In this document: positions 10,388-54,107 of the stretch, one piece after another
Position numbering within the stretch: position 1 is the stretch's first letter
How the letters are laid out: every line of letters begins with the position of its first letter
DNA from: Cyanophora paradoxa CCMP329
Lineage: Eukaryota; Plantae; Glaucophyta
Assembly (NCBI GenBank): GCA_004431415.1
Contig: QPMI01000064.1
Coordinates: forward strand, 186,001-250,000
Reading direction: 5' to 3'
Length of the DNA: 64,000 nt
Program-made: the position numbers and the translations under genes
Notes under the pieces: model-generated
The model's database searches: none
What the model was told of the DNA's origin: nothing
Seen by the model: only the letters and a program-made list of their open reading frames with translations

Positions 10388-10419
<32 letters not shown>

Positions 10420-19800: not shown

Positions 19801-20541
19801 CCCCCGGACGCTCTTGCCTCCGCCTGAGCGGTCGGTGGGGCCCGGGCCCGGGTTCGGGCCCGGGTCCGGTGGCGCATCGAGGTTCAGAGGGATTATCTCC
19901 AGGCTGGGCGGGGCGGGGCCCTTCTGGGGCGGCGATCGCGCGGCGCCCTCCGCGCTGGGCTTGCGCTTGGTGGGTGGCCCCTCCACCCGATCGGCCTCCG
20001 ACGGCGGGCGCAGGCCAGCACCTCTGCAGCAGGCGCACCGCCCCTCGCCCTCGTCCTCGTCCTCGCCCGAGGGCCGCCGGCGACTCGGCGCCGCCGGCGC
20101 GTCGACGTTCAGGGGCGAGCCGAGTGCCCGCAGGGGCACGCGGCGCGGCGGGCAACTCGGGCTTCGCGGCGCCGGCCCCGATCCGGCGCCCACGGCGGCC
20201 GCGGGTTCGGTCTCGGGCTCAGAGGGCGGCGTCCGTGGCCGCGGGCGGATGGGCTGGGCCGGAAACCCGCCGTATACGTAGAGTCCCGCGGCGCGGCCGC
20301 GGCGGGAGGCGGACTGCGGGCTCGGCGAGGACGGCGGCGCGTCCAGCGCCTTCGGCGACGGGTTGTGGCTGCCGCTACTTCCGCTTCGGGAGAGACAGGA
20401 GCTGCTGCCGGGCTCGGGAGGCGCGAGCAGGGCCGGCGAGGACCGCGCGCCGAGCCCGCTCAGTTCTATCTGCAGCTGCGCGTGCTGGGCCGACCGCGCC
20501 CGCAGCCGGGCGCCCCACGACGCGTCGGCATCTTGGGCCAT
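16875..20541 (-). CDS. Two-TM CHASE-domain membrane sensor without a kinase or cyclase domain
   Basis: Pro/Ser-rich N-terminus, TM1 ALHVALLALVACAFAFAK, then RFESTSSFVADNLKR..VSLLTRVEDSGRAAVEAW..IVQRQPNGQPPALAPRYNDYYPITAL..FGYMLDTASPGDGPRRSLILHSRDTG..VTGTLQIGKAL (CHASE core YYP..G.D...RR....RDTG). TM2 LAVPLAFIFLGVA-GTICANLSCLYSL, then a low-complexity tail to the stop at 16875. Confidence 0.7.
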
Positions 20542-25590: not shown

Positions 25591-28500
25591 TCAGGGCGCG
25601 GTGGCCTCCCAGCCGAGGCCGCCGCGGTCCTGGAAGACATGCCTGGCCAGGGCGTCTGCCTCCGTTGTCCCGTCGGCCTGCTGCCGGTCAGGGGGCGGGG
25701 GTAGGGGCACGAGAGGCCCGGCCGCGCACCCTGGCCCCCGCGACGCTCAGCTGGAGCGCGCGGCCGACGCGGCGGACGCAGAGCGGGCGGGCGCGCCGCG
25801 GCTCGGCCTGCGGCTTGGCCTGCTCGAGGGCGCGGGCGGGGGGAGCCCCCGCGAAGCTCCAGACGCGGAGGCTCTTGTCCGCCCCCGCAGACACGACGGC
25901 TGCGTCGCCGAGGGCCAGGGCGCAGACCCACCCCGCGTGGCCCGCGAGCGCGCACAGGGGCGCCCCGTCCCGCGCGGACCACAGGCGGACGGTCCCGTCT
26001 TCGCCGCCCGTCGCCGCCGTCTCCCCGTCCTGCGCCCGGCTTAAGGCGGAGGAAGAGAAGAGAGCCGAAGGGGGCGCACGGGGGAGAGGGCGACGCTGAG
26101 GACCCAGCCGGCGTGGCCGGAGAGGACCCGGCACGAGTCGCCGCCGCCGCCCCAGAGTCGCAAGGCGCTGTCGCCGACGCTCCACAGCCGCCCCGTCCCG
26201 TCGCTCGACGCCGACGCGAGCGTGCGCCCGTCTTCGGAGAAGGCGAGCGCCCGCACCCAGTCCGAGTGTCCAGCCAAGGTCCGCACCGCCCGCCCCTCGC
26301 CCGCGGCCCAGAGTTGCACGGCCCCGTCCGTGTACCCCGCCGCCAGCAGCGTCCCATCCTGCGCGGCCCTCGGCTCCGGGGGTACGGCCGGCGGCGGCTG
26401 GGGAAGGGGGTACCCGCGTGAGGGCGAGGGAGAGGGCGGAGCGGGCGGGCCTCGCGCCCTCCTCCCCATCCGCCTCGTCGCTCGGCCTTGCGAATCGGAC
26501 GGCCTCAGGCCGATCAAAGGAAAGCAGAGCGCAGGGGCGCACCGCCGGAGGACGTGCCGCGCGGCGCCCGTCTCGGCGCTCCAGAGGCGCACCGTTCCAT
26601 CATCGCCGCCGGAGGCGACCGTCGAGCCGTCCTGACCGAGCCGGCCGATGAGGGCGCGCAGCGAGCGCGAGGCGGGGCCGCACCTGCGAGAGGGCGACGC
26701 ACTGGACCCAGCCGCGGTGCCCCCGGAGCTGCACGAGCCGCGCCTCGCCCGCCGCCCACAGCGGCGCCCGCGCGCCCGACGGGTCCGCCACTCGCCACAC
26801 CCCTACCGTCCCGTCCCCGCTGCCCGACGCCAGCGTCCGCCCGTCCTGCGGCGGTGTCGGGCGGCGCGCGGCCCGACGAAGGCGCCGCAGCGCACGCGGG
26901 AGAGGGCGACGTGCCGCGCGGCGCCCGTCTCGGCGCTCCAGAGGCGCGCCGTCCCGTCGTCTGCTCCCGAGGCGAGCGTCGCGCCGTCGCGGGAGATGGC
27001 GAGCGCGCAGACGGCGCCCGTGTGCCCCTCGATGCTCCGCACCGCCCGCCCCTCGGCCGCGTTGTACAGCGTGATGCGGCCGTCCTCGCCGCCCCAGCAG
27101 AGCGCCGCGCCGCTGGGCGAGAGGGCGAGGCAGGCGGCGGCGGGCGCCTCGACGGCGGAGCGGTGGCGGAGGGCGGCGGGGCTCGCGAGGGCCCAGAGAG
27201 CGACGCGGCCGTCGGCCCCGCACGAGGCGAGCGTGCGGGCGTCGTCGGAGAGGGCGACGCAGAGGACGGCCCCCGCGTGCCACTCGGCGCAGTCGAGCTG
27301 CCGCCGCTCCGGCGCGCCCCACAGACGCAGCGTCCGGTCCTCCCCGCCCGATACCAGCAGCCGCCCGTCCTGCGCTCCGTTCGGCCGGCGCCGGCCCTCG
27401 ATAGTCCGGCGGGGGTGGCGGCGCACGCGGGAGAAGGCGAGGGCGCGGACGGGGCCCGCGTGGCCCTCCAGCACCCCCTCCAGCGCCCCGCTCGCGGCGG
27501 CCCACAGCCGGAGGGCGCCGTCCGGCCCGCCCGTCGCCAGCATGCGCGCATCCGCCGAGAGGGCCAGCGCGAGGACTTCCCGGTCCGCCACGATCCGCCG
27601 GACCTGCGGTGCCCGTCAGTGGCCGCGCGAAACGCTTTCCCGCCGGCGCGCGCCTCGCGGCCGGTCTCCGCCTCCAGCACCGCCACGCGCCCGTCCGCGG
27701 AGCCCGAGACGACCCAGCGGCCCTCCGCCGCCTCCGAGAAGAGGACGGCCGTCACCTGCGCTCCGCTTCGTGAGCGGGGCGGGCGCCGGGCGGCGGGCGC
27801 GGCGCGCCCGGTCCGTGTGGCCCCGGTAGACGGGCTTGACGCCCAGCCGGCAGCCGGCGAGGCGGGCGCCCCGCAGGTCGGCCCCCTCCAAGTTCGCCTC
27901 CTCCAGCACCGCCTGAGAGAGGTCCGCCCCGCGAAGGTCCGCCCCCGCCGCCTCCATCGCGAAGAGGTTCGCCCCCGGCGCGCGCACGCCGCGCAGGTCC
28001 GCCCCGGCGAACGAGACGCCAGCTGCGCCGCGGTCGGACCCAGGGCGCGGTTCGCGGTTCGCGCGGGGGTGCGCGCCCATGTTCAGGATCGTGAGGGAGT
28101 TGGCCGCCGCGATCTGGGAGCCCCCGCGCGCCGACTCGCGCACGCAGCGCCAGAGCGCCTGCCGGCGGCCCGAATCAGCTCGCCCAAGCGCGGAGGCGAA
28201 GCGCGCCAAAAGGTCACACGCACCGAGGCGAAGTGCGGCTCCCGGCGCGCGTGGTCGGCGAGGAAGGGCAGCACTTTGGTGTCGTCCGTGAAGAGGCTGC
28301 GCGGCCCTTGGCTCAAAGATCGGACGGAGGCGAAGCCGACCGAAGACCGCACCGCTGGCTCAGCTCGCCCGCGATGACGGCCGTGTCGATGAGGGCGTCC
28401 AGGCGCCTGCCCGCGATGCCGTCCGCCAAAAAGTACTCCTGCGCCGCCCCGCTGAGCCTTGCCGTCCTCCCTCTGCTCGGCGGAGGGGCACCTTTAGGGA

Positions 28501-31500
28501 GGCATGCAGGAAGTAGTACGAGACGCGCAGGCCGCCCTCGGCCGCCGCCGTCAGCGGCGCGGCCCCGAGCACGTCCGCCTTCTCCTTGTCCCGGCCGCTG
28601 CGGAGCTTCAACACGACGCGCTTCATTGGGGAGGGCCAAGAATAGCGCACGCGAGGTAGGCGCGGAGCCCGGCCTCGACCTGCGCGTCGCCCCCCTCGCC
28701 GGCCTCGGCCAGCGCGGGGTCGCCCACGAAGAGCGAGAGGCCCGCCGTCCCGGCCTGCGGGGCGCGGGCGTGGGCGCCACGCCTTCAGGGGAGACAGAAG
28801 GGGAGGGCGAACCGTGTCCATGGCGCGGGCGAGGAGGCGGCAGACGATGCGGCACTCCTCGACGAGGGCGGCGGCGCCGCCCTGCCCGCGGCGCTTCTCG
28901 GCCTCGCGCGTGAACCACCCCTCCACAAAGGCGTCGTAGATGTCCTTCATGAGGAGGCGCGCGCCGCCGCCGGCCTCGCCCCCGCCCTCCTCCGCGCGCC
29001 GGGCGATCGCCGGCAGCTCCCGGCACGCGATCGAGAGCACGAAGGGCGTCCGGATGATGTCGAGCAGGCTCCCGATCTGCTTGACCTTGGCCACGTACCA
29101 CTCCACGTCGTGCAGCGGGTCCGGGCTCGCGGCCAGCAGCTGCTGCACGAAGGCCCGCGTCTGGCCCGCGTCGAAGGGGCACGTCCACGCCTCGCAGACG
29201 GAGGGGGACGGCCCGGGGTCCAGGGAGAACGAGTCGCGGTACGACTTGCCGAGGGCGGAGAGGTACTGAGCGCGGCAGGAGACAACCAGCCTCGCGGACC
29301 AGAGGGGCAGGTCCGGGTCCACCACGTGCGGGGCCTGCGACAACCTTGTCAAGGCCCGCTTTCCGAAGCGCGCGCGAAACACGAGTGACCTCCCGGAGGC
29401 GGCCTTCGTCGTAGGCGTCCAGTATGGGCAGGAGGCGGCACCTGCGCCGCGTGAGGAGGCGGGGAGAGCGGGGGCGGGAAATCGCGCACCCCGCGAGGAG
29501 GGCGTCCTCGAGCTCGCGGTCCCGCTCGCCGCGGCCGAGGCCGAGCTCGCGGAGGAGGAGGCGGGTGAGGGGCGAGCGGGCGGCGCCGCCGCGGAGGGAG
29601 GAGAGGGGAAGGAAGGCGGGGAAGGGGTCCCCCGAGGCGGGCGCCCAGGCGAGCAGGAGCCGGCGGTGGAGCCGCTTCAGGCTGGTCGTCTTCGAGCAGC
29701 CCGAGTCGCCGGTGAGGAGGAGGGAGCGGAAGGGGCCCGGGCCGGCCGACGCCGGGCCGGCCCCCGACGCGGCGAACGCGTCGAGGAACGAGTCGAGGTC
29801 GAAGCGGCGGCCCTCGCCGTCGGCGTAGCGGCCGTCGCTGTCCGGCGCCGCCCACGCCGGCACGTACACCTGCCGCGCCAGGCCCTCCCTCTCGTACGCC
29901 TCCAGCGCCCGCTCGCGCGCCTGCGCCGGAGCTCAGAGGCGCGTGGCGGGGCTGAGCGGGGGGGGGGCGCGCCGTGACGAGGCGGTCGCGCAGGCGCTGC
30001 TCGGGCGTGCGCGCGCCCTCGACCTCCAGCGCCTTGCGCAGCAGGGCGGACTGGCCCGCCGCCGCGCTCTGTGCCGCCCGGGGCGCACGCGGCCGGCTCG
30101 GCCGCACCTGCGCCGCCGCGGCCGCCTCCCGCGCGCGGGGGGCGCCCGAGTCGCGGAGCCGCTCGAGCGCTTCGAGGGCGGCGCGGGAGGCAAGGCCCCG
30201 CCCTCGAGCCCCGCCGCGTCCGCGAGGGCGCACGCGATCGCGCGGTGCACGCGCTCGCCGGCGCCCTGCGACGCCGCCGCCCCGGCGGCGGCCTCCAGCA
30301 GCCGCACCGCCTCCGCCGCTGCCTCCTCCGGGCCGCCCTCCACCACCTGGGCGCGGCTCAGTCTCTCAAACGGATCGAATCAAAGATTGAAGGGGGCGGG
30401 CCCGAAGGAGGGCGGCGCAGAGCGCGAGCGCCAGCTCGGGGCAGCGGACGACGTCGCGCAGGGCCCGGCCCTCCTCGCCCAGCAGCAGCGCGGAGAGCTG
30501 CGGCAGGCGCTCGGGCGTGGCGAGGGAGACCAGCAGCCGTGCCTCTGAGAACCTGCCGCGGGTGAGGCGGGGGCCCGCCTCGGTCCGCGACGCGCGCACC
30601 ATGGGCGGGCCTTCTTGACGCCGTCGGCACCCGCGACGGCCCGCAGGTCCGCCCACACGGACTGCAGCACCTCCCGCGCCTCCCCATGGTTCTCCTGAGC
30701 GGGCGTAAGGACACGCGGGATCAGGGCGGCGGCGCCCGGCGCGAACCTTGAGCCACATGACGGCGTCGATGACGGTCGTGGCGCCGAAGCTGCGGGCGAA
30801 GGTTAGGCGAGCGCGACGCGAAAGCTTTGAAGGTGCATGCGCCTGCCGAGGCCCTCCACGACGAACTTGGCCGCTTTGTACGCCATCTTCGCGAGGCGCA
30901 CTGCGGCGGCTCGGCGCGGGCGGTGGCGGATCGGGCGCGGCGGCGGCGGCGGCGCACGGGCGGCCTGGAAGCGGCGGACCATGTCGCCGAACTTGTCGAA
31001 GTCGCTGTTCGCGGAGACGAGCGCCTGCCGGCGGGTTCGGCTCGGCGGCCGCTGCGCGGGCGGCGCGGCCGACTCGCCTGCTGCGCGAGGACGGCGGCCG
31101 CCTCGGCGCGCCACCAGCCACCCGCGCCGCCCGCCTCCTTCGCCAGCGCCAGCAGCCGCTCGCTCAGCGGCTTGACCGTTTCCTCGTGGCTGACCGCCGC
31201 TCCATCGCCCGCCGCCTCGAGCGCGGCCAGCGTCGCGGCGACGAGCTCGAGGCGCGCGAGCGTGTCCGCCTCTCCGTACTTGATCCCGCGCACGCGCTCG
31301 AGCTGCGGGGGCGGCGCGTGAGAGGGCGGCGAGCTTCGCGCGGGCGGCGCGCGCCTGCTGCGTGCAGAACTGGACGACTTCGGCGCAGTCGGAGGCGGTG
31401 AACGTGTTCGGCGGCAGGCGGCCCAGCGCGTCGACCAGCGCGGCCAGCAGCGCGGGCTCCACGAGGGCCGCCCCGCGCGCCCGCTCCATGAGCTCTCCGA

Positions 31501-32094
31501 CGACCTGCCGCCGCGTCGTCGGGCGCGCACGGCGCGCGGCGGGCGGCGCGGCGGCACCTTTCTGCAGGAAGAGGCGTGGCGGGTAGAGACCAGGGCGCAG
31601 AGATCCGCGATGTGCACTCCGGAATCTGGAAGCGAGCGGAAAGCGAAGACCGCGGCCTCGCAGAGGACCCGCAGCTTCTCCTTTGCCGAGGCCGCGTCTC
31701 CGTCGAACTCGTGCTCAATGAATCGCTTCAAGGCTCGCGCGAGGCGCCCCACCTCGCCGAGCGCCGTGCCCTGGTTCATCAGGTCGCTGGATTGAAGCAG
31801 GACGAACAGGACGGCCATTTGCTCGCCATTCTGGATGCTGTGCAGCGAGAGGCTCGCGCTCTCGAGCGCCACAAGCTGCGCACGGGCCTTCTTGGCCGTG
31901 TCTGGGTCCAGCACAGTTTCCAGCGCGCCTTCTCCCACACCAACCGGCGCCGCGGCCGGCGCCTTCGCCTCCGCTCCGCCGGGAGAGGCAGGCTGAGGCG
32001 CGCCGCTCGCCACTTCTCCCGCCGTACGCGTGGCTGCATGCTCGGCGGCTGGCGGCGCGCCGCCCGCGGCCGCGGTGCTCGCTCCGCAGCCCAT
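25591..32094 (-). CDS. NLR-like STAND protein: acylation motif, ARM-like domain, NACHT, pentapeptide repeats, ~13 WD40 repeats
   Basis: MGCGAST start. NACHT: YVP, Walker A LLLTGDSGCSKTT (~29684-29720), Walker B LLPILDAYDE, sensor LVVSCRAQYL, TPFVL, winged-helix YYFLHASLK-EYFLA. AAANSLTILN then FAGADLRGVRAPGANL..ADLRGADLSQAVLEEANLEGADLRGA. Many GH..V..LA.S.DG..LASG..DG..RLW repeats. C-terminus LQLSVAGAR..ARHVFQDRGG, stop TGA at 25591-25593. Confidence 0.92.
30160..31870 (-). other. ARM-like helical N-terminal domain of the NLR (copy 1 of the shared domain)
   Basis: Aligns by eye along its length with 32690-34450 (+); see findings. Confidence 0.85.
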
Positions 32095-32210
32095 CAGAAG
32101 CTGCCGTGCTCACCGCAGCTTACTGCACGCTCCAGACCGGCGGAGAGGGCTCGCTGCTCGCTGCATCGTTGCGTTTGATCGCTTGACCCGTTTTGTTCGG
32201 AACCCGCCCC

Positions 32211-32241
<31 letters not shown>

Positions 32242-32353
32242 TATCCGAACTCTTGGAGCCTCGTCGGGGCGTCGGCTGTGGCGCCCAGGACGGGTGAAAG
32301 TTAGCTATGGACAACTAGCGACCTGTTGGTGCGCGAGGGACCGCTCCGTGCCC
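32095..32353. promoter_or_regulatory. Putative bidirectional promoter shared by the NLR and the chimeric dynein (259 bp, poly-C at 32212-32241)
   Basis: Divergent ATGs at 32094 (-) and 32354 (+), both encoding MGCGAS. Confidence 0.6.
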
Positions 32354-35300
32354 ATGGGTTGCGGCGCAAGCTCCGCGTCCGCTCCGCCGGCGAACGCAAG
32401 CGTGGCCGCGACGCCAGAGAGCCAGCGAAAGCATGCGGTAACATCCGCGAAGTATTCTGAGGTACGCAGAGCACTCCGCCCCCGCTCTCGAGCTGAATGT
32501 CCGTTCGCATGGTCCAGGCGGCGCCAGCCGAAGCCCCGCGTGCTGCTGAACCTGCGGCGAGCTCGGCCCCAGCTACAGCTCCAGCTCCGGTCGCAGCGCC
32601 AGTCCCAGCGTCTCCCCTGGAGCCCGATGCGCCGCCAGCGAAGGCCACGCGCGCCGCGCGCCGCGGCCGTCCGCGGCCTGCGCCCTTCGGCGCCGTCGAG
32701 GCAGCGGCACACATCGGATCGCTGGACGATATCCTCGGCCTAGAACACATCTCGCACCTGTACCGCATTGTTGCGGCCGCGGCCGCGAGCTCGAGCGCTA
32801 GCGACGAGGCGCCCGATGCGGACGCCGACAGCAAGGCGCTGCGTCGCGCCGCGCTCGCCCTGCGAGTCGTCCGGGACAGCTTCAACGGCGATCTGAACGC
32901 GGCGCTCTCCAAGCTTCACTCTCTTTGCATCGCAGGTCCGCGCGGCCTTAAAGCTTAGCGCGCAGGGCCGCGTTAGCTGACACTCTCCTCAGCGCTGTCC
33001 GCATTCGCCGAGGACGCGTCGCCATCGGACGACAGCATTTGCGACGTCTGCGCGATATCCGGCACGGGAGACAGCGAGCTGTGCCGCAGGGTCCGCGAGA
33101 CCGCGCCGCGGCCCCGGGCCCGCGCCCACCGCCCGCCGACGCCGCCCGGGCGCAGCTGCTGGCGGCCCTCGTGTCCAAGCTGGAGAGCCGGCCCCTCGTT
33201 CCAGGCGCGGCTCTGTACGAGGTGGTGGGCGCGCTTGGTCGCATCCCGCCGGACTCGCTCGGGCCTCGGGACTGGGCCGACCTCCTCGCCTTCTGCGGCC
33301 GCCTCGTGCGCGCCGCGGAAATCCGCATGCATATGCCCCTCTGGCGTGCTGATCTTCCTGCAGGTGGAAGGGGCGACGTCGACGGATGACGGCGCTGCGT
33401 GCCTCGCGCGGCTTGAGCTCGCCGCTGCCGTCCTCTCCGCCCTCGAAGCGACCGATCCCGAAGGTCCGATCCGCTCTCCATACCGCGGCCCTGCCTCGCC
33501 GACGCGCCCAACGTGCAGCGCTGGCGTGGCGGGCGCGGCACGCCGGCGTGGTCCGCCCGATGTGCGAATTTCTTCAAAACATCGCGGCGAGGGCGGCAGG
33601 CCCCGGCGGCTGGTGGCGCATCGAAGCGACCGCCCGCCTCTGCCTTCGTGCAATCGCCTCCACTCGCGGCGACTGCGACCGCTTCGGTACCGCTGTCTCC
33701 CGCTGCCGCGCCGCTGGTGCGTGTACTGCCTTGGAGTGCGTGTCGCAGTGCCGCATCCGGCCTCACGTTCCGCAGCCGAGGCGCTGGAGCAACTGCACAA
33801 GTCCGGGCGGCTCGCATCCCGTGCCGTCTCCTCTTACGGCGTCGGATCCGTTCTCGAGATCATTCTATGGCCCCAGGTGCGCTCGCGATCCCAGGCGGCC
33901 CTGCACCCACGCACGGCTGATGCGCAACGAGAGCACAGGATGGGCAAGAAGACGCGGCGCGGGCGCTGTGGGAAATGTGGGAGAACTCGCGAACCGTCAC
34001 CGGCGAGCCCGTGCCGCTCAGCGATTCGCCGTGGTTCGATAATCCGCGTTGATTTTCTTGCCGCCCTCCCCTGAAACACGCGTAGGTTCGTTCGGGCGCG
34101 CCTGGTGGCCGAACTGGGGGCCCGAGGCGCGATGGAGGAGCTGGAGACCCTTCTGGCTGCGGCGGGCGGGCGCCCCCTCGCAGACATCGCCTCTTGCAAG
34201 GAGCTCGCTCTCGCCTGCACCGCCACACTCGCCGCGGTGCGCGCCGCGCGGGGCATGCGTGGGCCCGCCTCACGTCGCCTCAGGTGGCGGAGGCCGAGTC
34301 GGGTGACACGGCCGTGGATGCAGTGCAGCTGCTGGAGCGGCTCGCAGCAAGGGGCGCGGCGGCGGCGGCGCCGGCCCTCGAGGACCTGGCCGCAAACGCT
34401 GCCTCCGACACGGCCAAGGCTGCTGCGCAAGCCCTCGAACGGCTCCGAGTGAAGCCCAGCGGGATGCAGCGACCGCCCGTCGCACGTGCTTCGCGCCGAA
34501 CCGCGCGGCATCCTGGCGAGCGAACGGCACTCGTCGCGGCAATTCTCGGAGCTGCGTCCAAAGAGAATGCAGCCGCTCCGAAATCGCACGGGCCGAGCGC
34601 GGCCTCGTCGGAGGAGGGGACGGAGGGCGAGCCGAGGGGCGCGATCAGCGTCGACCAAGAGTGCGTGGCGATGCAGGCGCTGTGGCTGGCGGCGAAGCTG
34701 CGGCCGTGGAAGCTCGAGTTCTACGCGCCAGAGGAGCTCCTGGATCTCTGCGACGAGCACGCCACACGCACGCACTCCCTCCTCTCAGCGCCCGTCGCGC
34801 GGGAGGCCGAGCCGCGCGCCCGGCTCCTCGAGTGGCAACGCCGTCTGGACGACCTTCGAGAGCTCCTGGAGACGCTGCAGCGATGTCACCGCGAGCTGCG
34901 GGATCTCGAGGTCAGGAAGAAGAATGTACTCGCGTGCACTGAGCCAATGCAGCTCTTGACCGATTTCCCCAGTTCACTTACACCGGCGGCGGGTCGGAAG
35001 TGGACGTGCCCGGGGCTCAGACGTTCGCTGCGGCGCAGGCTCTCTGGCGAAATGTGGCAGGCGCAGTTGCCGCTGCGGATTTCGCGATACTTCCGCTGGT
35101 CGGTGCCGCGGGCGTCTTGGCGGACGCGCAAGCTGCCCACCAGCGGCTTGAGGAGACAAGGAAGGCGCTGACGGAGCACCTCGACGTGCTGCAGGACGAC
35201 TTCCCCCGCTTTTTCTTCCTCTCGCACTGGGAGCTCGCGTCGGCCATCCCGCAGTTCAAGGGGTACGAGCAGGACCCGGGCCTTCTGGAAGGCACCGCGC

Positions 35301-38300
35301 GCCACCTGTTCCAGGGCGTCAAGGCGCTGGACGTCCGGGCTGGCGCCGTGGTTGCCGCCCGCTCTTTCGAGGGCGAAGTCCTGCCCTTCGAGGAGCCCAT
35401 CCCGCTCAAGCAAGCCGGCCTCGCACCGCTCTGGCGCGCCATCGAGGGGGCCCTGCGGGGCGCCGTGCGCGCCCAGTTGACTCGCGCCCTCCCCACCTAC
35501 AACCCGGTGCGGCTCGCACTCTTCCTGCCCCCGCCTTGGCTGAGCGCCCGCGCAGCACGCGAAGTGGGCGACGGAGTGGCCGGCGCAGGTGGCGCTTGTC
35601 TGCTCTCAGCTCGTGTGGACGCGGGAGGTGGAGGCGGCCATGGAAGCCGGCAGCGTGCGCCCGTACCTTGAGGCTTTTCGGGCTCACATGCTCGAGATCG
35701 TTCGCCTGCTACCCGAAGAGATGCCGAGGGCGAGACGCTCGGCGCTGCAGTCGCTGCTGACAATCAACGTGCATGCACGCGACGTCCTCGACTCGCTTGC
35801 CAACGCCGAAGTGTCCGACAAGCGCGACTATGCGTGGATCTCCCAGCTGCGATGTGCGTCCCTCGCTTTTCTCTAACGACGCCCATTCACGCGCCACAGA
35901 CTACTGGGAGGACGGAGTCGTGATCCGGATGGCGGACGCCTCGCGCGTGTACGGCTACGAGTACTACGGCTCCATCGAAGCGCTCGTCGTCACACCGCTC
36001 ACCGACCACTGCTACCGCATTCTTCTCGGAGCGATGCACAACTGCCTTGGCGCTGCGCTCGAGGGGCCCGCCGGCACTGGGAAGACCGAGACCGTCAAAG
36101 CGCTCGCTGTGGCCTGCGCGCAGCAGTGTGTAGGTGAGCCACCCCGCGCAAACGCCCCGCCCCCACCGCGCGCCCCTGCCGACGATCCTGCACAGTGCTC
36201 AACTGCTCGGACAGCCTCGACTACCTGATGCTGGCCAGGTTCTTCAGGGGCGCCGCGCAGTCGGCCGCGTGGGTCTGCTTCGACGAGTTCAACCGCATCG
36301 ACGTCGACGTCCTCTCCGTGGTGGCCCAGCAGATGCTCGCCGTCCAGCGAGCGCTGCAGGCCGGCGCCGCGACCTTCCTCCTGGAGGGCGCCGAGGTCCG
36401 CCTCGCGACCGGCCCGACCCTCGGCCTCTTCTTCACCATGAACCTCGGCTACCTGGGGCGCTCGAGCCTGCCGGACAGCCTCAAGCCCCTCATGCGGCCC
36501 GTCGCGGTGACCCTCCCCGACTTCAGCGCCGTGTACGAGGTCACGCTCTTCTTCTACGGCTTTGGCGAAGCCCGCCAGCTCGCCGCGAAGATCGCGGCCT
36601 TCTACCAGCTCGCCCGCAACCTCCTCTCGCAGCAGGATCAGTACGACTGGGGCATGCGCGCGGCCAAGCACGCCCTCTCCATGGTCCAGACCCTCAAGGG
36701 GCTCTACCCGGGGACTTCGGAGGAGAGCATCGTGCTGCAGGCGCTCATCACCGCCAACCGCGCGAAGCTCGTCAAGGCCGACGTGCCCCTCTTCGACGGC
36801 CTCTGCGCCGACCTCTTTCCCGGCGTCTCGGCCGCCAGCACGGACCACAGCGCCCTCCTCGGCGCCCTGCAGCGCGTGGCGGGGGAGATGCGCCTGCAGC
36901 TGACCGACTCCTTCCGCCTGTCGGCCCTGAAGCTCTACGAGGCGATCCTGCTGCGACACGGCGTCATGCTCGTCGGGCCTCCCATGGCAGGGAAGACGGC
37001 CCTGTACAGGCTGCTGGCGGCGGCGCTCGGCGAGCTCAACGCGCAGGGCCCGGCGGTTGAGCGGGCCGTCTCGGTGGCAGTGATCAACCCGAAGGCCGTC
37101 CCGCCCGGGCGGCTCCTCGGGTCCTTCACAGACTCCACGCAGGAGTGGCAGGACGGCGTGCTTGTGGGCCGCCTCCGCGACTTCTGCGGGTGGCGCAAGC
37201 AAGCGGGCGAGAGCGAGCCGCGCAAGTGGCTCGTGCTCGACGGGCCCGTCGACCCTGCCTGGGTCGAGGACCTGAACTCGCTGCTCGACGACAACCGCGT
37301 CCTGACCCTCATGACGGGCGAGCGGCTGCTCCTGCCGAAGAACGTGACCGTCCTCTTCGAGCTCCAGGACCTGGTCGTCGCGTCCCCCGCCACCATCTCC
37401 CGCGTCTGGATCGTCTTCATGGACGCAACGGACCTCGGCTGGCGGCCCCTGGTCGAGTCCTGGCTCGCGTCGCTGCCCGTGGCCATCGAAGCGGCTGGGA
37501 AGGAGGTGCGCCCGCCCGCCCGCCACGCGGCGCCGCGGCCTCGTAATCGTTGTGCGCAGGCGATCCGCGTGCTGGTCGACTGGCTGGTGGGGCCGAGTCT
37601 CGAGTTCGTCCGGGCCCGCGTGCGGGAGCCGTGGGGGACGCAGGACGCGCAGCTTGTGGCGGGCCTCCTCCGCCTCCTCGGGGCGCTGCTCGAGGACGCG
37701 GCGGACCCGAAGCAGCTCGCGGCCCTCTTCGTCTTCGCGCTCGTGTGGACGGTGGGCGCCTCGGGCGACGAGCCCGGGCGCGAGGCCTTCGACGGATTCC
37801 TGCGGCCGATCGTGGCGGGCGTCGACCCCGCGCGCCCGCCGCCGCCCCGCGCGGCGTTGGACCTCCCCGACGGCGCATCTCTCTACGACCTCCGCTTCGA
37901 CGGGGCGGCGGGCCGCTTCGGCCGCTGGGCCGACCGCATCGGGCCCGACTGGCGCCCGCCCCCCGGGGCCGTCCCGGGTGGCTTCCTCGTCCCGACGCCC
38001 GAGACGGAACGCGCGGCCTTCGTCCTCGCTAAGCTGGTCTCGCACGGCCACCCCGCGCTCCTCGTCGGGCCGCCCGCCGCCGGCAAGACGGCGATCGTGC
38101 GGGCCTGCCTGTCGCACCTCCCGCCCCGCTTCCGCCACGCCTCGCTGGCCCTCGCCACCCGCACCGAGGCCTCCGTGCTCCAGCAGCGGATGGAGGCCGA
38201 GCTCGTCAAGCGGGCCCGTGCGTCCTCCCCGGCCCCTCCCTCGGCCAATCTGACGGCCGGCAGGCGGCGTGCTGGCGCCGGATCCGGAGGGGGCCCGCCG

Positions 38301-41300
38301 GCTCGTGGTCTTCCTAGACGACCTGAACCTGCCGCAGCGGGAGAAGTACGGCTCGCAGCCGCCCCTCGAGCTCGTGCGCCAGTTCTGCGACCACGGCGGC
38401 TGGTACGCGGCTGCCGGGACCGACTTCCTCCGCGTGGAGGGCGTGCAACTCGTCGCCGCGATGGGCCCGCCGGGCGGCGGCCGGACAAGCATCAGCGCCC
38501 GCCTCAGCCGCCACTTCGGCCTGCTCTCCATCCCCGGGCCGAGCGGCGAAGCGCTCCGCAGCATCTACACGAGCGTGTGTTCGTGGTCGCTCGCCCAGCA
38601 CGGCTTCAGCGGGGACGTCGTGCGCCTGGCCCCCGCGCTCGCCGCCGCGACCGTGCAGCTGCACGAGAGGGCCGTGCAGGCGTTCCTCCCGACGGCCGCC
38701 AGGCCCCACTACGTCTTCACCGCCCGCAGGGTCGGCGAGCTCCTCCGCGGCGTCCTGCTCGCCTCGCCGCAGCGCGTCGCGACGGCCGAGGCGGCGGCGC
38801 GCCTCTGGGCCCACGAGGCGCTCCGCGTCTACGCCGACACGCTCGTGGACGACGCGGACCGCGCGGCGCTCGTGGCGGCGGTGCGGGAGGCGGCGGCGGG
38901 GCCGCTCGGCGTCCCCTCGAGCGTGCCTGCGCGCACCTCGCGGGCACCGACGCGGAGGGCTGCGGGAGCTGCACTGGGCGGGCGTGGCGGGCCGCTACGA
39001 GGAGCACGAGGCGGGCGAGCTGGCGCAGGCTCTGCAGGCGGCCGTGGAGGCGGACGGCGCCGGCGGCACGCTCCTCTTCCGCTCCGCCGTCGAGCACGCC
39101 GCGCGCGCCTCGCGCACCCTCACCGTCCCCGGCTGCCACGCCATCGTGCTCGGCGTGCCGGGCTCGGGCCGCGCCGAGCTCGTGCGGCTCGCCGCACGGC
39201 TGGCGGGGGCCGAGGTCGCCGAGCCCGCGCCCGAGTGGCGCAACGGCCTGCGGCGGCTGATGCGGCAGGCGGCGGCGCGGCGGACGGCACTCGTGCTGCA
39301 GGAGTCGCACCTCGAGGGCGGCTCCGTCCTGGATGACGTCTCGGCCCTCGTGAAGGGCGACGAGCTCCCGGGTCTCTTCTCCGCGGCCGAGCGCGCCGAG
39401 CTGGGCGAGCTCGTGCGGCATCTCGCCCCGGCCGGCGCCGCGCCGACGCCCGACGCCCTGCACGCCCTCTTCCTCGGCCAGTGCCGCCAGAACCTGCACC
39501 TCGTCCTCCTCCTCTCCCCCTCCGGCGACGACGCCCGCGCCCGCTTCCGCGACTTCCCCGCCCTCCTTGAGTCCTGCACCGTCGACTGGCGCGCCACGCC
39601 GCCGGTGCCGCGCCGCCGGCCCCGCGCCTGACGCGCTGCCGCAGGTTCGGCGAGCTCCCAGAGACGGTGCTGCACGCCGTGGCGGGCAAGGCGCTTGCCG
39701 GGGCGCAGCTGGAGGCGGCCGCGCGCGCCCCGCTGGTGCAGGCGTCCGTCGCCATCCACGCCTCCGTCGGCACCCTCCTCGTGCAGTTTGGGGCCGAGTT
39801 CAGGGGCCACCTGCCCGCCGCGCCGCCCTCCTTCGCGAGCTTCCTGGCTACCTTCAAGGCCCTGCTCGCCTCCAAGCGGCAGGAGCTTGCCGAGCAGCGG
39901 CAGCGCCTCGGGCTCGGCCTCGCGAAGCTGGCGGCGACGCGCCTGCGGCTCGAGTTCCTCCTCAAGGAGCAGGAGCAGATGGCGGCGGACATCGCGCGCG
40001 CGCAGACGGAGGCGGCCGCGACGGCCGCGTCGATCGCCGCGAAGAAGGTGGAGACGGCGCGCGCGCTGGAACGCGTCGCGGCGCAGCAGCAGTTCGCCGG
40101 GGAGCGCGCGGAGGAGGCGCGGGCGATCAAGGAGGCATGCGACGGCGAGCTCGCGCGGGCAGCGCCCGCCCTCGAGGCGGCGCTGGCGGCGCTGGACACG
40201 CTCAAGCCGGGCGACATCGCGCTGCTGCGGACGATGCAAAACCCGCCGGAGGGCGTGCGCCTCGTGATGGAGGCCGTCTGCGTCATGGCCGACGTGCGGC
40301 CCGTTGTGGCTGGCACCACCTCCGCGGGCGAACCGGTCCGGGACTACTGGGAGCCCGCCAAGAAGGCCCGTCTTCGCGCATCTGAATTCGAGACTCGCCC
40401 CTGACGCGCCGCCGCAGATGCTGTCGGACCCAGACTTCATCCGCAGCCTGAGGAGCTACGACAAGGAGCAGATCATGCCGAGCATCGCGAAGACCATCGA
40501 GGCCGTGTACCTCCCGGACGAGCGATTCCAGCCGGCCGCGGTGCGGCAGGACTCGCGCTCGGCGGCGGCCGTCGGCCTCTGCCTCTGGGTGCACGCCATC
40601 TTCGGGTACCGGCGCGTGCTGCGGGAGCTGCGGCCGAAGCGGGAGGCGGCGCGCGCGGCGGACGCCCTCTGCGAGAGGACGATGGCGGAGGTGGCCGAGC
40701 TCCGCGCGCAGCTGCAGCGGGCGGAGGGCGAGCTCGCGGCGCTCGACCGCCAGCTCGCCGCCACGCAGCGGCGCGCGGCCGAGGCGGAGGCGGCCCGGCG
40801 GCGCAGCGCGGCCAAGTCGGCCCGCGGCAGCCGCCTTTTGGAGGAGCTTGCAGACGAGCGCGAGCGGTGGGAGCGCGCGGCCGCCGAGCTCCGCGCCGGC
40901 GAGCCGCGCCTTGTCGGCGACGTCCTCCTCGCGGCCGCCTGCGTCTCGTACGCGGGGCCCTTCCCCCCCGCCTACCGCGAGCGCGCACTGCCGGCCTGGC
41001 TGGAGGCCTGCCGCGCCTCCGCCCTGGCGCACACGAGCCCCTTCGCGCTCCAGGCGGTGCTCGGGGACCCCCTCGCGGTCGGCGAGTGGCACGCGCTCGG
41101 GCTCCCGGCCGACGGCTTCTCGACCGACAACGGCGTCATCGCCCTCGCCTCCCGCAGGCGCGCCGCCCCACGAGACGGCCGCCTGCAGCTAATTGCATCG
41201 CAGGTGGCCCCTCATGATCGACCCGCAAGACCGGGCGAACCGGTGGGTCAAGAACATGGAGAAGGCGAATGGCCTCGTGGTGCGCGCCGTCCCTCCGATG

Positions 41301-44300
41301 ATTCCGCCGCTCCGCCCGATCGATTCCCCAGGTCCTCCGGTCGCTGCAAGGGGAGGGCCTCCGGCAGTTCGAGGCGGCGGTGCGGGCGGGGAGCCCCGCG
41401 CTGGTCGAGAACGTGGGCGAGGAGCTCGAGCCGGCCCTGCTGCCGCTGCTGAGGAAGGAGGTCGTCGAGAGCGGCGGCGCGCGCTTCGTCTTCCTCGGCG
41501 GCGCCGCCGTCGAGTATGGGGACGGCTTCCGCCTCTACCTCACCTCCCGCCTGCCCGCCGGCCGCCTGCGCGCCGAGCTCGTCGCCCGCGCGTGCGTCGT
41601 CAGCTTCGTGGAGACGCCCGAGGGCCTCGAGGAGCAGCTGCTCGGGGCCGCGCTGGCCATCGAGCACCCGGAGACGGTCGAGTGGAACCAGCGGCTCGTG
41701 CAGGCGCGGCTCGGCCGCGACCTTCGGCGGGCGCAGGAGGCCGTCCTTGAGCAGCTCTCCAAGTCCGACGGGGATCTGCTGGAGGAGGAGGGCGAGGCGG
41801 CCGTCGAGCGCATGCGCGCCTCGCACGCCCTCGCGCGCCAGATCGCCGAGAAGCGCCGCGCCGCCGAGGCCGAGCTGGCGGCCGAGCGGCGGCTGCGGGC
41901 GGGCCTGGAGCCCGTCGCCCGCGCCGGCGCGACCTCTTCTTCGCCGCTTCGGAGCTCCTCCACGTGAACCCGATGTACCAGTACAGGTGCGAGCTTCTGC
42001 ATCCTCGCCGCGAGGTCATAACTGAACTCCTTCGCCTACAGCCTGGCGTGGTTCACGGGCCTCTTCGGTGCCCTCGTGCGGCAGACGCCGCGGCGGGCCC
42101 CCGACCGCGCGGCCGAGCTCGTTGCGGCCGTGCGCTTCGGCGCCTTCTCCGCCGTCTGCCGCTCCCTCTTCGATCGCGACCGCCTCCTCTTCGCCCTGCT
42201 CCTCGCCGCGCTCACCCTGCGGAGGGAGGGCGCGCTGGAGCCCGCCGAGTGGGCCTTCTTCGCCACCGGCGGCCTCTTCGGCGGCGAGGGCGCCGCCGCC
42301 GCCAACCCGGCCCCCGCCTGGCTGCCCGCCCCCGCCTGGTCCGCCCTTGCCCGCCTCGCCCGCCTCCCTGGCCTCGCCGCCTTCCCCGCCCGCTTCGCCA
42401 AGGAGACGGCCGGCTGGCGCACGGTCTTCGAGGGCGCCGAGCCGCACGCGGCGGCCTTCCCCGGCGCGCCGCTTCCCCCCTTCCACCGCCTCCTCGTCCT
42501 CCGCTGCCTGCGCCCCGACTCAGTCGTCCCCGCCGCCCGCGCCTTCGTCGCCGAGACGCTCGGCGAGCGCTTCGCGCGGCCGCCGCCCGCGACGCTCCAG
42601 GAGGCCCTGGACCTCTCGACGCCCGCCAGCCCCCTCCTCTTCGTGCTGAGCTCCGGGGTGGATTTCACGGGCGAGCTGCTGGCCCTCGCGGAGCGCGCGG
42701 GCCGGCGGGACGACCTCTCCATCGTCTCCCTGGGGCAGGGGCAGGGGCCCGCCGCCGCCCGCCTCCTCCTCGAGGCCTCCCGCACGGGCAAGTGGCTCCT
42801 GCTCGCGAACTGCCACCTAGCCGGCTCCTGGCTCCATCAGCTCGAGCGGGCGCGCCCCTCTCTGTACTCTGTTCGGCCCGCGCGCCGCTGACGCCACTGA
42901 TAAATTAGATGTGCGAGAACTTCGTGCCGGAGGCCCTGCATCCGAACTTCCGCCTCTGGCTCACGTCGCAGCCCAAGGAGGACTTCCCGCTGCTCCTCCT
43001 CCGCAGCTCCCTGAAGATCACGAGCGAGGCGCCCCGGGGCCTCCGCGCCGCCCTCGCGCGGTCCCTGGCGGCCAGCGGCGGCGAGCCCGAGCTGCCCGAG
43101 GCGAGCGCGCGCGAGTGGCGCCGCCTCCGCTTCGCCCTCTGCCTCGCGCACGCCGTCGTCCTCGAGCGGCGCGAGTTCGGCCCGCTCGGCTGGTCCGCCC
43201 CGTACGAGTTCCACGACGCGGACCGCGCCGCGGCGCTCGCCGCCCTGCGGGAGGCCCTCCGGCGCGCCGGGGACGGGCCGCCGCCCTGGCGGACCTGGCG
43301 CGGGCGGCCGCCGAGCAGCACTACGGCGGGCGCGCCGACGGCGACCACGACCGTGCCCTCCTCCGGTCCCTCTTCTCCCAGGCGTACGGCGGCGTTGGGA
43401 TCGGCGGCATTCCACTGCCGCCCGACGGGACCCTCGAGGATCACGTCTCCTTCGCCGCCGCGCTGCCCGACGATGGCGACGCCGCCGCCGCCGCGGTCGG
43501 CCTCCACGTGAACGCGAGGCACGCGGTCGCGCCCCGGATTCCTCGCGCCTGACGCGGGCGGCAGCCTCGCGCGGCGGCGGGCGGAGGCGGCGAGCCTGCT
43601 CGAGGCGGTCCTGGCGACCCAGTTCACGGTGCCTCGGCGCGTTTCGCGCGCCGGGGCGCCTGCTGACGCGGCCACAGTCGTCGGCGGCGGCGGCGGCGGC
43701 GCGGGCGCGGGCGGGGCCAGCTCGAACCCCGACGCTCACGCGGTCGCGGGCAGTGCGCGGCCACAAACCGACCGCTCGCGCCCGCGGCTGATCCCTCCAC
43801 AGGCGTGCTGGAGGCCCTGGCGGGCCTCTCGGTCGGCCCCGCCAGCCCCTCGCTGGGGGACGGCCCCCTGCAGTCGGTGCTGGCGGCCGAGTCGGCGCGC
43901 TTCGAGCGGCTGCTGCGCGAGGTCGCCAACGCGCTGCGGACCCTCCGCCTCGCCCTCGAGGGCCGCGTCCCCATGAGCCCCGAGCGGGAGGACACGGCGG
44001 CCGCCCTGGCCGCGGGGCGCGTGCCGGAGAGCTGGTTCCGCTTCTCCTACCGATCCCTGCGGCCCCTCGGCGGGCGCGCCTCCCGCCCTTTGTCCCCTTT
44101 CTCCCTTCCCTCTGACCGCCCGCAGGTACGTGGCGGACTTGGCCGCGCGCGTCGCGTTCTTCGCGGCGTGGGCGGCGGGCCCCGCCCCGCCCGCCGCCTT
44201 CTGGCTCCCGGCCTTTTTCTCCCCGCACGCCTTCCTGGCCGCCGCGCGGCAGGCGCACGCGCGGGCCGCCGGCGCCTCCCTCGTCAGCGTCCGCCTCGCC

Positions 44301-44710
44301 TTCGACGTGCCCGTGCGTGCCCTGGCGATGCAATCCATACCGGCGCGCCGCTGACGCTCCGCAGGCGGCCGGGGCGCCGCCCCCGAGCGTGGCGTGCTCG
44401 TGCGCGGCCTCTTCCTCGACGGGGCGCGCTGGGACGAGGCCCGCGGCGCCCTCGGCGAGCAGAGGCCCGGCGAGCTGTACCCCCCGCTGCCCCCGCTTTG
44501 GGTCCGGCCCTGCGCCCCGGACGACCCCCGGCCGCCTCGAGCTCCGGCCCGCGGCACGCGTGCCCCCTGTACCAGCTGCCCACGCGCCGCGCGCCGCACC
44601 CGCTCCCCCCCTCCCTCAACCACGTCGTCGACGTGGCGCTCCCCTCCGACGCGCCGGCGGGGCACTGGCTCCAGCGCGGCGTCGCCCTCCTCTGCCACCC
44701 CCCCGACTAG
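32354..44710 (+). CDS. Divergent axonemal (inner-arm-like) dynein heavy chain whose tail is replaced by an acylated ARM-like domain; three 1-bp frameshifts as assembled
   Basis: Linker FPRFFFLS; VHARDV..WISQLR; YGYEY..LVVTPLTD. AAA1 GPAGTGKTET (36064), CFDEFNRIDVDVLSVVAQQ, TMN.GY.GR..LP..LK, YDWGMRA. AAA2 GVMLVGPPMAGKT, LDGPVDPAWVEDLNSLLDDN, SPATISR. AAA3 GPPAAGKT, FLDDLNLPQREKYGSQPPLELVRQ. AAA4 GVPGSGR. Stalk/MTBD PALEAALAALDTLKPGDI..NPPEGVRLVMEAVC. AAA5 RWPLMIDPQ. AAA6 SLGQGQG, NCHL, HPNFRLWLTS. C-terminus GLFLDGARWD, CPLY, HWLQRGVALLC, stop at 44710. Confidence 0.93.
32690..34450 (+). other. ARM-like helical domain at the dynein N-terminus (copy 2 of the shared domain)
   Basis: FNGDLNAALSKLHSLC, LGRIPPDSLGPRDWADLLAFC, LARLELAAAVLSALEA, GGWWRIEA, ELALACTATL and ALERLR each match the NLR domain. 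Confidence 0.85.
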
Positions 44711-45050
44711 CCCCTAGTAGTCTAGTACCTAGTTAAGGAAGCAGACGTAATGCTTCGTGATCTCTGTAAAGTGGCATCTCTCTAGTCGCTGTCGCTAGAG
44801 TCCTCGTCCGAGTCTTGGTCGTGCTGGATGAAGCGGAGGGCGGCGGCCCACCGCGCCGCTGCCTCTAGCGACGCCCCCGGCGCCGGCCGCCGCGCCCACA
44901 GGCCCTCCATCTCCAGCCTCAGGTTCTTTGTTCCCCGCCCCCGCGTCCGCGCGGCGGTCCAGCTGCTCGCCCGGCGCGTCCCCCCCGATCGCCCGCACGA
45001 GGAGCCGCACGTCCTCCCAGTCCCCCTCCTCCTCCCGCACGTCGTCTCAC

Positions 45051-45173
45051 GAGCTCCGCGCGGTCCGATGTCCGAAAGGCTTAGTCCCGTAGGTTCATCT
45101 CTCGACTTGACACAGATGGACACCTCAGTTATATCTCTATAGCTAGCCATTTGTCTCGGTGTGTGCGAATTCA
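45051..45173 (+). repeat. Dispersed direct repeat, copy 1 (~120 bp)
   Basis: Near-identical to 52590-52706, apart from a few substitutions and a 6-bp TAGCTA insertion. Confidence 0.9.
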
Positions 45174-45499
45174 GTTATCACTCCCGCGCGTCGTCTGCGG
45201 GCCCCCTGCGCGACTCAGTGGGGCTAACCTCTCTCTCCTTTCGTCTCCCCCCGCCCCCCGCCCCCCCCCCTCCCCCCCCTCCCCTCCGCTTCGCCCTCTG
45301 CTCCCTTTTCCCTTCACATGTACAGCGTCCCTAGCTTCCTCAAACTCCCTCCCCTTCTCACCCCCTCTTGGCCCCACCCATCGTCTGCCAGATCTAGAGG
45401 CCCTGAGGCCCCACCCATCGTCTGTCCCACCCCTCTTTATAACCCACGCGTACGTCTGCCAGAGTCTGCATGTCTGACCGGCAGTGATCATGACCCATT

Positions 45500-52076: not shown

Positions 52077-52589
52077 TAGCTCTCCAGTATTAGTGCGCAC
52101 GATATTAATATTAGAACTCCGATCGAACTCTGATCAATTGGACAATTGCAAACGCTGATCGAATTCGCCGCCGAACGGCCTCGACGTACTCTGAATCGTC
52201 TCTGATGAGTCTGATCATGATTCATGAGTAGCCTACTGTAGTCTGCAGCTGTAGCTCTTTCCCCCGACCAATCTTCCCCGAATGCTCTGAGCCCGGCGGC
52301 TCCACCAGGCTTGCTCTCGGACGAGCGAGCCCCCGACCCGACCCGCCGTGCCGACGACACGGCGGGCCGTACTCTAGCGTGTACAGAGTGGTTTAGATTA
52401 TAGTGCGCCTTCTCGGAGGCCCTAGCTTACTAGGCATAGCGCTAGCTACAGCTGCAGCTCACTTCGCTGCCCACCTCTGATTGCTATTCTCGTCCCTGGG
52501 TAGTCACTCCCTTTCCCGCGTAGGATCTTTCCTGTGCTGCAGCTCTAGACTTAGTCCCCGGGGTAGCGTCTCCAGTTATTTCCATATCC

Positions 52590-52706
52590 GAGCTCCACCC
52601 GGTCCGATGTCCGAAAGGCTTAGTCCCGTAGGTTCATCTCTCGACTTGACACAGATGGACACCTCAGTTATACCTCTAGCCATTTGTCTCGGTGTGTGCG
52701 AATTCA
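52590..52706 (+). repeat. Dispersed direct repeat, copy 2
   Basis: Matches 45051-45173. Confidence 0.9.
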
Positions 52707-54107
52707 TTGATAAATCTGCAGCTGTAGCTATGGACGTCGATTCACCAATGAACTTTCGATCACTGATGAATTCGGCAATTTTAGGGACCACCCCACTCAG
52801 GCGAACCTCCCATATTGAGCGACCCATGGCCGGCACCTTGCTAGCATCTTCGGCTAGATAGATGACCGGTCGGAAGGGCGCGTCACGTAGAACATTGATA
52901 CATGTGCCGTGGTGTATCAATGCGACGTCCACTTTTGCAAAAAAAAGGCAATATTAGGGACCAATTGCAAAACAAATTAAGGGCCCAGGCCTCCGAGGTA
53001 CAACAAAAAACCACAAAAGACCCACGAAATCAATCATTGCGACCGGTACCAGAGTACTGAGTACGCTCCTGAGACCTAGTTTCTGGGTCGATCGATCGCG
53101 AACACGCTCCTCGGAGTTCTGGGACCACCCTCCTGGCCATGGGACCTGGATTTGGGGTCGCGATCGGTACCGGTACCGGTGTATATTTTAGTATATACGT
53201 ACGCGTTGGACCGGTACACCAAATTTTGAATTTGAGGCTAGGGTCCAAGGATCCGCTGGGCGGCCTGGCCCCCGCCGATTCGGCGCCGACTAGTACTGGC
53301 CCCTACTACTGGGCCGGGACCGGCCGGCGCCGGACCGGAATTCAATCATTCGAACCCAATGACTCAGTGATCGAAGCCGGGCCGGCGCCGGCCCGGCGGG
53401 CATGCCGCATGCGCTCTGGAGTCTGGGCGCCTCGCCGGCCTCGGCCCTCCAGTGCCTCCACAAGGCTCCAGCCGGGTGACCCTCGGGACTGGCAAAGGCT
53501 GGCATGCGCAGCCACTGCCAGCCAGTGGCCATCATGATTCATGATCATGGCATGGGCCGGTGGCGTGGTACTAGTATACGTATACCGGCCCGGCGGCCGC
53601 CGTGATCAACTTGGCCAATTGGCAAGTTGGATGATGCCACATTGCCACTGTTGCCACACACGGTGTGACAGTGTGACACACCGTAGCAGTGGTGGCACGC
53701 AGCCAGTGCCGCGAGTCCCGCACTGTCACTGTCTGTCAGTCTGTCAGTGACTGTCACAGACTAAGAGCCTCGGAGTCTAAGACTCACAGTGTGACCTACG
53801 ACACTGCCAGGCTGACCGTACGGACAGTCATTCAAAACTGCATATATGATTTTGCCATCATTACATCAATTTACATGATCGATCATGTTGGATGAACTTG
53901 GATCGCCGGCGATTCGCCGCTACATTAAAATATTGCCAAGTTGAAATGTGCTGCTTATAATTACCCAGTATTAGGGCCAGTATTATCACTGAGTCATACT
54001 GGCCAGTCACTGCTTGTCAGTGTATTATCATATTGTTGTCACTGCTTGTCAGTGTTGCGCATGCCACGCGTACCGTAGTACGTGCACCGTGGCACAGACT
54101 CACAGTA

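Follow-up and report, generated by a model that had tools for sequence, protein, structure and literature searches.

The tail of a dynein heavy chain decides where the motor works, and the tail of the single-headed inner-arm dyneins docks on the axoneme through actin and p28/centrin. Here we describe a gene from the glaucophyte Cyanophora paradoxa that encodes a motor of this kind in which the tail appears to have been replaced by the N-terminal part of an NLR-like protein. The gene (tig00000248_g21807, hereafter g21807) lies head to head with an NLR-like gene (tig00000248_g21806, hereafter g21806) in a stretch of 64,000 nucleotides, referred to below as the window, whose source was identified as C. 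paradoxa contig tig00000248 by exact look-ups of public gene models. Its closest described relatives are dyneins of the class DHC7/IAD3 (human DNAH3, DNAH7, and DNAH12; Chlamydomonas a, b, c, and e), followed by DHC8/IAD4, with which it shares the motor from the linker to the C-terminus. Unlike these, it carries an NLR-derived solenoid with predicted acylation in place of the tail and neck. Tail swaps have been described only among axonemal forms, such as DHC4-alpha with its kelch/IPT tail and the combination of a DHC7 head with a DHC9-beta tail (PMC5100056). These resemble g21807 in joining a motor to a recombined N-terminal part, but their tails still dock in the axoneme, whereas here an immune-receptor-like gene was the donor and supplied a membrane-anchor motif. 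Nearly every surveyed tail can be assigned to a known dynein class: among the 3,351 dyneins analyzed by Kollmar, new classes and orphans had tails that could be aligned to known classes, the one exception being from a diplomonad (PMC5100056). Mass spectrometry detected no myristoylation or palmitoylation on the N-termini of axonemal heavy chains (PMC10605206).

The NLR side of the locus also has described counterparts. ARM_5 (PF23948)-NACHT-WD40 proteins of Mortierellomycetes and Mycoavidus have a long alpha-solenoid N-terminus followed by NACHT and WD40 (10.1101/2022.03.16.484565), but the Cyanophora copies are rich in introns, begin with MG-C motifs of the acylation type, have GxxGxSK[T/S] as Walker A, and fall short of the curated cut-off for ARM_5. 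Plant paired NLRs (RRS1/RPS4, RGA4/RGA5, and Pik-1/Pik-2) are genetically linked, arranged head to head, and share an N-terminal domain type. However, both partners there are NLRs, one a sensor and the other an executor (PMC13071261), whereas the dynein has no NACHT or NB-ARC domain and no repeats, and shares the ARM-like domain only. Fungal NWD2/HET-S provides the case of an NLR gene next to a non-NLR gene with a homologous segment, but that segment is a short amyloid motif, which lies at the N-terminus of the NLR and at the C-terminus of a pore-forming HeLo effector, whereas here both N-termini carry a solenoid of 430 amino acids and the gene beside the NLR encodes a motor. We found neither an NLR-dynein pair nor an NLR-tailed dynein in the open-access literature. 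To judge by its gene structure, the chimera is real, and the locus is a tail-swapped dynein with an unprecedented donor. A natural swap of a tail for a membrane anchor, cut near the site that biochemists use for motor constructs, would be a direct case of the redeployment of an axonemal motor and, if true, the first acylated dynein heavy chain in the literature that we searched. A functional link to the NLR would amount to an immune output of a new type, and even without that link an expanded glaucophyte NLR-like family would be seen to donate modules to cytoskeletal genes.

An NLR-derived N-terminus on a dynein motor

An earlier note on this DNA had claimed that g21806 and g21807 begin with a colinear, homologous helical domain. 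This was borne out in our exon models, in which the N-termini are 36% identical over 335 amino acids (E 2e-44) within a shared solenoid of ~430 amino acids, and every motif pair that the note had matched between the two proteins is present. The Smith-Waterman score of the two N-termini was 559, compared to a mean of 56 and a maximum of 108 in 500 shuffles, which places it 55 standard deviations above the shuffles; the N-termini of the public models are 33% identical (E 2e-31). The joined exon models were derived from window coordinates and used for local comparison, while protein searches had single-frame references or public models as queries; the public models are RNA-guided predictions and not proof of expression. 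BLAST with six-frame fragments picked up no ARM homology, the exons being too short. Six introns are common to the two ARM regions at the same residue and phase, with a chance below 1e-7 even under strong site bias, indicating that the first ten exons of the dynein descend from an NLR gene of an intron-rich lineage. Because the junction between the two parts falls inside a single open exon, which is also found in the public model, the fusion does not depend on a splice guess. We conclude from the gene models that an inner-arm dynein received, in place of its tail, an NLR 5' cassette made up of the acylation motif, a linker, and the ARM solenoid.

AlphaFold predicted the shared domain to be an all-helical solenoid (predicted local distance difference test score 67), and fold searches with it returned generic ARM/HEAT solenoids only, none of them significant. 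"ARM-like" is therefore a fair label, but one that is uninformative about function. Amyloid-motif signalling was rejected, as what the two proteins have in common is long and all-helical.

The remainder of g21807 has all that was claimed of it as a dynein heavy chain gene, with the linker, six AAA modules, stalk with microtubule-binding domain, and C-terminal domain found in order. The catalytic residues of AAA1 are kept (Walker A Lys, Walker B Asp-Glu, sensor I Asn, and sensor II Arg, together with the AAA2 Arg finger), and conservation extends to the AAA3 motifs and the microtubule-binding domain. In most segments, the best matches were DNAH7, DNAH3, DNAH12, and the Chlamydomonas single-headed chains, while the segment from the linker to AAA1 had Chlamydomonas DHC2 (class 8) as its first-ranked match. 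By these matches, the protein is a single-headed inner-arm motor, probably of the DHC7 or DNAH3/7/12 type rather than DHC8. Similarity to dyneins begins at residue 597, which corresponds to residue 1064 of Chlamydomonas DHC2, indicating that the chimera lacks ~1,060 residues of tail and neck. This start lies, by a weak alignment, near residue 1456-1460 of human dynein-1, where the engineered motor construct 8FD6 begins, and ~50 residues inside the motor boundary of Kollmar (1409). The class-specific tail that binds actin and p28/centrin is absent, and the N-terminal 596 residues are NLR-derived or of low complexity. The public model g21807.t1 (P0011) is 99% identical to our exon model over residues 1-2850, has the same N-terminal fusion, and ends at a frame break (41936). 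Alanine makes up 18% of the motor portion and 20% of both proteins.

The fusion appears to be old. Introns at shared positions resemble each other no more than random ones do, and four-fold degenerate sites match in 51% of cases against 36% expected from composition; both are near saturation, which indicates an old duplication and rules out a recent one. The dynein copy of the ARM domain keeps 60% of the columns that are invariant in the family and 24% of the variable ones, while the NLR copies keep 72-92%. These proportions indicate that the dynein ARM is under constraint, but freer than in the NLRs. Its exons (32354-34469) have a GC content at third codon positions (GC3) of 0.77-0.78, compared to 0.95-0.97 along the whole motor and in most of the NLR.

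The NLR-like gene and its family

The build of g21806 is that of a tripartite STAND/NLR protein, with a solenoid, a NACHT module, and repeats. The order of its domains is an acylation-type start, an Ala/Pro linker, the helical domain (58-510), NACHT, pentapeptide repeats, and ~12 WD40 repeats, as had been claimed, although the NACHT profile (PF05729) matched weakly in the window (E 0.009). A NACHT annotation is listed for the paralogues of g21806, and over the core from NACHT to pentapeptide seven of them are 46-50% identical to it and two more 32%. Our exon model agrees with the public model g21806.t1 (P0001), except that the latter makes a detour around a 1-nucleotide gap at 30201. In all ten members of the NACHT subfamily (the window copy at 29687-29710 on the minus strand and paralogues among P0002-P0012), Walker A reads GxxGxSK[T/S]. 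Compared to the canonical GxxGxGK[S/T], the Lys and Thr are retained and the Gly before the Lys is replaced by Ser; as the replacement is conserved across ten members, it is probably a functional variant. Ligand-triggered oligomerization and an immune output are putative properties of this NLR-like family.

The ARM-like domain occurs, as the usual N-terminal part of the family, on at least 10 other NLR-like proteins of Cyanophora, encoded on six other contigs; nine of these proteins also have pentapeptide and WD40 repeats, and one is a short model. This copy number is a lower bound, as the homologue searches were limited by word sharing and length. MG-C-type starts are found in four of the ten, and MGCGAS itself in one. 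Pfam ARM_5 was weakly matched by 10 of the 12 aligned N-termini (best E 5.8e-7, below the curated cut-off). Four ARM-NACHT-pentapeptide-WD40 paralogues (P0004, P0005, P0006, and P0008) are clustered on tig00000042 (g15539-g15554); the ARM domains of three of these are 85-90% identical, and this cluster appears to be a recent tandem expansion.

Table 1. Features of the NLR-like and dynein genes, in coordinates of the window.
Feature	Position	Strand	Details or basis
NLR-like gene tig00000248_g21806: N-acyl motif, low-complexity linker, ARM-like solenoid, NACHT, pentapeptide repeats, ~12 WD40	25591..32094	-	28 exons, 27 introns, ~1,692 aa, stop at 25591
MGCGAS start of NLR-like protein, predicted Gly2 myristoylation and Cys3 palmitoylation	32077..32094	-	Consensus only
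ARM_5-like helical solenoid of NLR, residues ~58-510, exons 1-9	30145..31923	-	Models, profile match
Apparent 1-nt deletion in G run of NLR exon 9	30201..30202	-	Exon model
NACHT-type STAND module: variant Walker A GDSGCSKT (~29687-29710), Walker B, winged-helix FLHASLKEYF motif; limits approximate	28440..29870	-	Pfam and alignment
Pentapeptide repeats	27843..28022	-	PF00805, E 1.7e-13
WD40 repeats, ~12 by eye, 8 individually above Pfam threshold	25850..27830	-	Pfam and eye
Divergent spacer between both start codons, 259 bp; ~30-nt C run at 32212-32241; no inverted-repeat remnant	32095..32353		Sequence
Chimeric dynein heavy chain gene tig00000248_g21807 with unannotated or split 3' part	32354..44710	+	27 exons, 26 introns, ~3,650 aa, stop at 44710
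MGCGAS start of dynein chimera	32354..32371	+	Sequence
NLR-derived ARM-like solenoid of dynein, residues ~98-535, exons 2-10, six introns common with NLR	32701..34469	+	Exon model alignment
Junction linker within exon 10 (34284-34910, open frame); NLR likeness gone by residue ~565, dynein from ~597	34470..34652	+	Alignments
Motor domain, single-headed inner-arm type: linker, AAA1 (Walker A 36064-36087), AAA2-4, stalk and microtubule-binding domain (~39860-40950), AAA5, AAA6, C-terminal domain	34653..44710	+	Pfam, protein matches
Apparent 1-nt deletions at ~38917, 38959, 41935, 43290, and ~44555, and two ambiguous at donors 43628 and 44312; no in-frame stops	38917..44560	+	Exon models

Origin and possible role of the chimera

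The explanation that we favor, and to which we give about an even chance, is that g21807 encodes an old, exon-shuffled, membrane-anchored monomeric dynein, and that its head-to-head linkage with g21806 is a relic of its origin. By the sequence, the 5' exons of an ARM-NACHT-pentapeptide-WD40 gene, encoding the acylation motif, linker, and ARM solenoid, were copied and fused to a duplicated gene for a single-headed inner-arm dynein, at a point within one exon that directly precedes the motor linker. The resulting chimera keeps the full motor without the axoneme-docking tail. A start of the MGCGAS type is a consensus for myristoylation and palmitoylation, and at the level of the motif both proteins have the Met-Gly start, the Ser at position 6, and a nearby Cys. 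Acylation of this start would hang the dynein on a membrane by two predicted lipids, with the solenoid as spacer and adaptor, and most likely it works as a monomeric minus-end motor that, in numbers, would pull the membrane, or cargo on it, along microtubules of the flagella or the cortex. MGCGAS also starts the Chlamydomonas ciliary proteins FAP12 and FAP138 (PMC9436004). The head-to-head layout would most simply be what is left of a local duplication in inverted orientation about a promoter common to both genes; no palindromic remnant of such a duplication was found in the spacer or the introns. Descent of the dynein ARM from g21806 itself is plausible by position, but unproven. As a different role for the chimera, replacement of a lost cytoplasmic dynein was rejected because Cyanophora has DHC1 (PMC5100056).

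Several observations weigh against this explanation. The acylation, localization, and motility of the chimera are predictions. Local origin is weakly supported, with three alternative placements not rejected (approximately unbiased test, p-AU 0.19-0.34). The dynein ARM has the longest branch (1.1) as well as the lower GC3 noted above, suggesting that constraint on it may be relaxed. We did not find an orthologue outside Cyanophora in a search with the P0011 region, with an ARM profile among proteins of 240-770 amino acids, in JGI metagenomes, or among ESM Atlas features, but these searches were word- or size-limited and missed known paralogues, so that absence is not shown. Lastly, the 10.9 kb of dynein coding sequence has five clear and two ambiguous single-base losses, while the neighboring histidine kinase gene has no evident frame break.

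These breaks raise the possibility that g21807 is a decaying chimera, once functional or nearly neutral, whose breaks are real and from which no full motor is made today. The five to seven breaks contrast with one in the NLR gene, the public model ends at 41936, and the long branch and lower GC3 of the ARM would fit with decay. However, every loss, including that in the NLR gene, is of a single base in a G/C run, none is a stop or a larger indel, and the breaks fall within a stretch of 74-80% GC. In-frame stops are expected from 2.5% of point changes, which makes their absence modest evidence. Conservation and GC3 are undiminished after the breaks, the part past the early stop of the public model is equally conserved, and the models of ARM paralogues contain similar local frame slips. 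The assembly was made from PacBio RSII reads with Quiver and majority-rule Illumina correction, and annotated with BRAKER/Augustus (PMC6704402). Because the breaks are single-base losses in G/C runs without stops or larger indels, are followed by conserved sequence, and have parallels in the paralogues, they are probably, if unproven, assembly errors, and we regard decay as rather unlikely.

Linkage of the two genes and alternative functions

The earlier note had read the locus as a dedicated receptor-plus-motor pair. The divergence of the two genes across the 259-bp spacer and the MGCGAS motif at both N-termini were found as described, as were the three head-to-head pairs that it had counted in the window (13916/14008, 20541/20977, and 32094/32354), the spacers of the other two being ~90 and 435 bp. 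Layout of this kind is common within the window and by itself would be no proof of a signalling partnership. On 299 common columns, the dynein ARM is 37% identical to that of its neighbor and 34-41% identical to unlinked lineages, and the g21806 ARM is 41-50% identical to unlinked lineages. Residues shared exclusively with the dynein ARM number 12 for the neighbor, 16 for P0009, and 12 for P0010, and the tree unites the two window copies at 64/88 only, as long branches. These comparisons indicate that the shared domain is neither restricted to the linked genes nor closest between them, and they lend no support to the claim of a dedicated pair. The note had named, as something that would refute its reading, the domain sitting on many unrelated, unlinked genes; this was borne out in part, the other carriers being unlinked but all NLR-like.

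A broader form of the idea is an innate-immune module in which an activated NLR-like receptor engages a co-regulated, lipid-anchored, tail-less axonemal dynein through ARM contacts, with microtubule-based membrane movement as the output, or in which the motor is a guarded bait. We consider this unlikely, and both of its versions would need a specific ARM-ARM or guard contact, which is hypothetical. In the first version, an activated NLR oligomer would bind the dynein by like-to-like ARM contacts on a shared membrane and be moved, or move the membrane, along microtubules. The linkage has long been kept across a short spacer, the common anchor motif would co-localize the two proteins, and the dynein ARM is constrained, has two small insertions in common with its neighbor, and is weakly placed as its sister; homotypic partners, moreover, need not be very similar, as is generally known of TIR and CARD pairs. 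Against these points stand the occurrence of the ARM on unlinked proteins, the neighbor identity and exclusive residues that are no higher than elsewhere, and the frequency of head-to-head pairs. In addition, the ARM family is listed as an uncharacterized candidate (10.1101/2022.03.16.484565) and appears in no source as a homotypic signalling domain, and on balance such a module seems doubtful.

In the second version, the chimera would be a lure on the membrane, displaying the surface of a dynein motor to dynein-hijacking proteins of viruses or bacteria, and an NLR of the family would monitor it. The immune-gene origin of the anchor, the divergence of the AAA-rich motor (alanine 18%), and the general knowledge that many viruses use dynein are in keeping with this. 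However, a motor of 3,000 residues with every catalytic motif would be needless for a decoy, and this motor is axonemal rather than dynein-1, whose light and intermediate chains are what viral adaptors usually bind; those chains require the tail, which is missing here. We believe a decoy to be improbable. That the fusion is an assembly chimera or a chance similarity of alanine-rich helices is scarcely credible, since, despite the 20% alanine of both proteins and the base errors of the assembly, it would have to account for the alignment score, the six common introns, copies that are diverged rather than identical, and a junction in an open exon.

Other features of the window

The genes in the window have 70-80% GC and introns of 39-65 nucleotides, with GC donors in 15 of the 53 introns of the NLR-like and dynein exon models. 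By eye and with a crude gene finder, the gene at ~900-5603 (minus strand) encodes a hybrid sensor kinase with PAS-like, histidine kinase (HELRTPL box), ATPase, and receiver parts. A signal-peptide kelch/EGF-like gene at ~10300-13916 (minus strand) diverges (~90 bp) from a small gene at 14008 (plus strand) that is BTB/POZ-like by eye. The third divergent pair (435 bp) consists of a Pro/Ser-rich protein at 19362-20541 (minus strand) and a PPR-like organelle-targeted protein at 20977-~24640 (plus strand), and the motif GTACCCC is frequent in the introns of both genes. Directly 3' of the dynein gene, GC drops from 75% to ~55%, and an element of ~135 nucleotides occurs twice on the plus strand (45050-45183 and 52589-52716), 7.5 kb apart and with 90-97% identity. 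The low-GC region at 59800-64000 (minus strand) encodes a repeat protein that is rich in Cys, looks GCC2/GCC3-like by eye, and has a transmembrane C-terminus, and a tandem array of a GGATT-type pentanucleotide repeat lies at 10140-10350.

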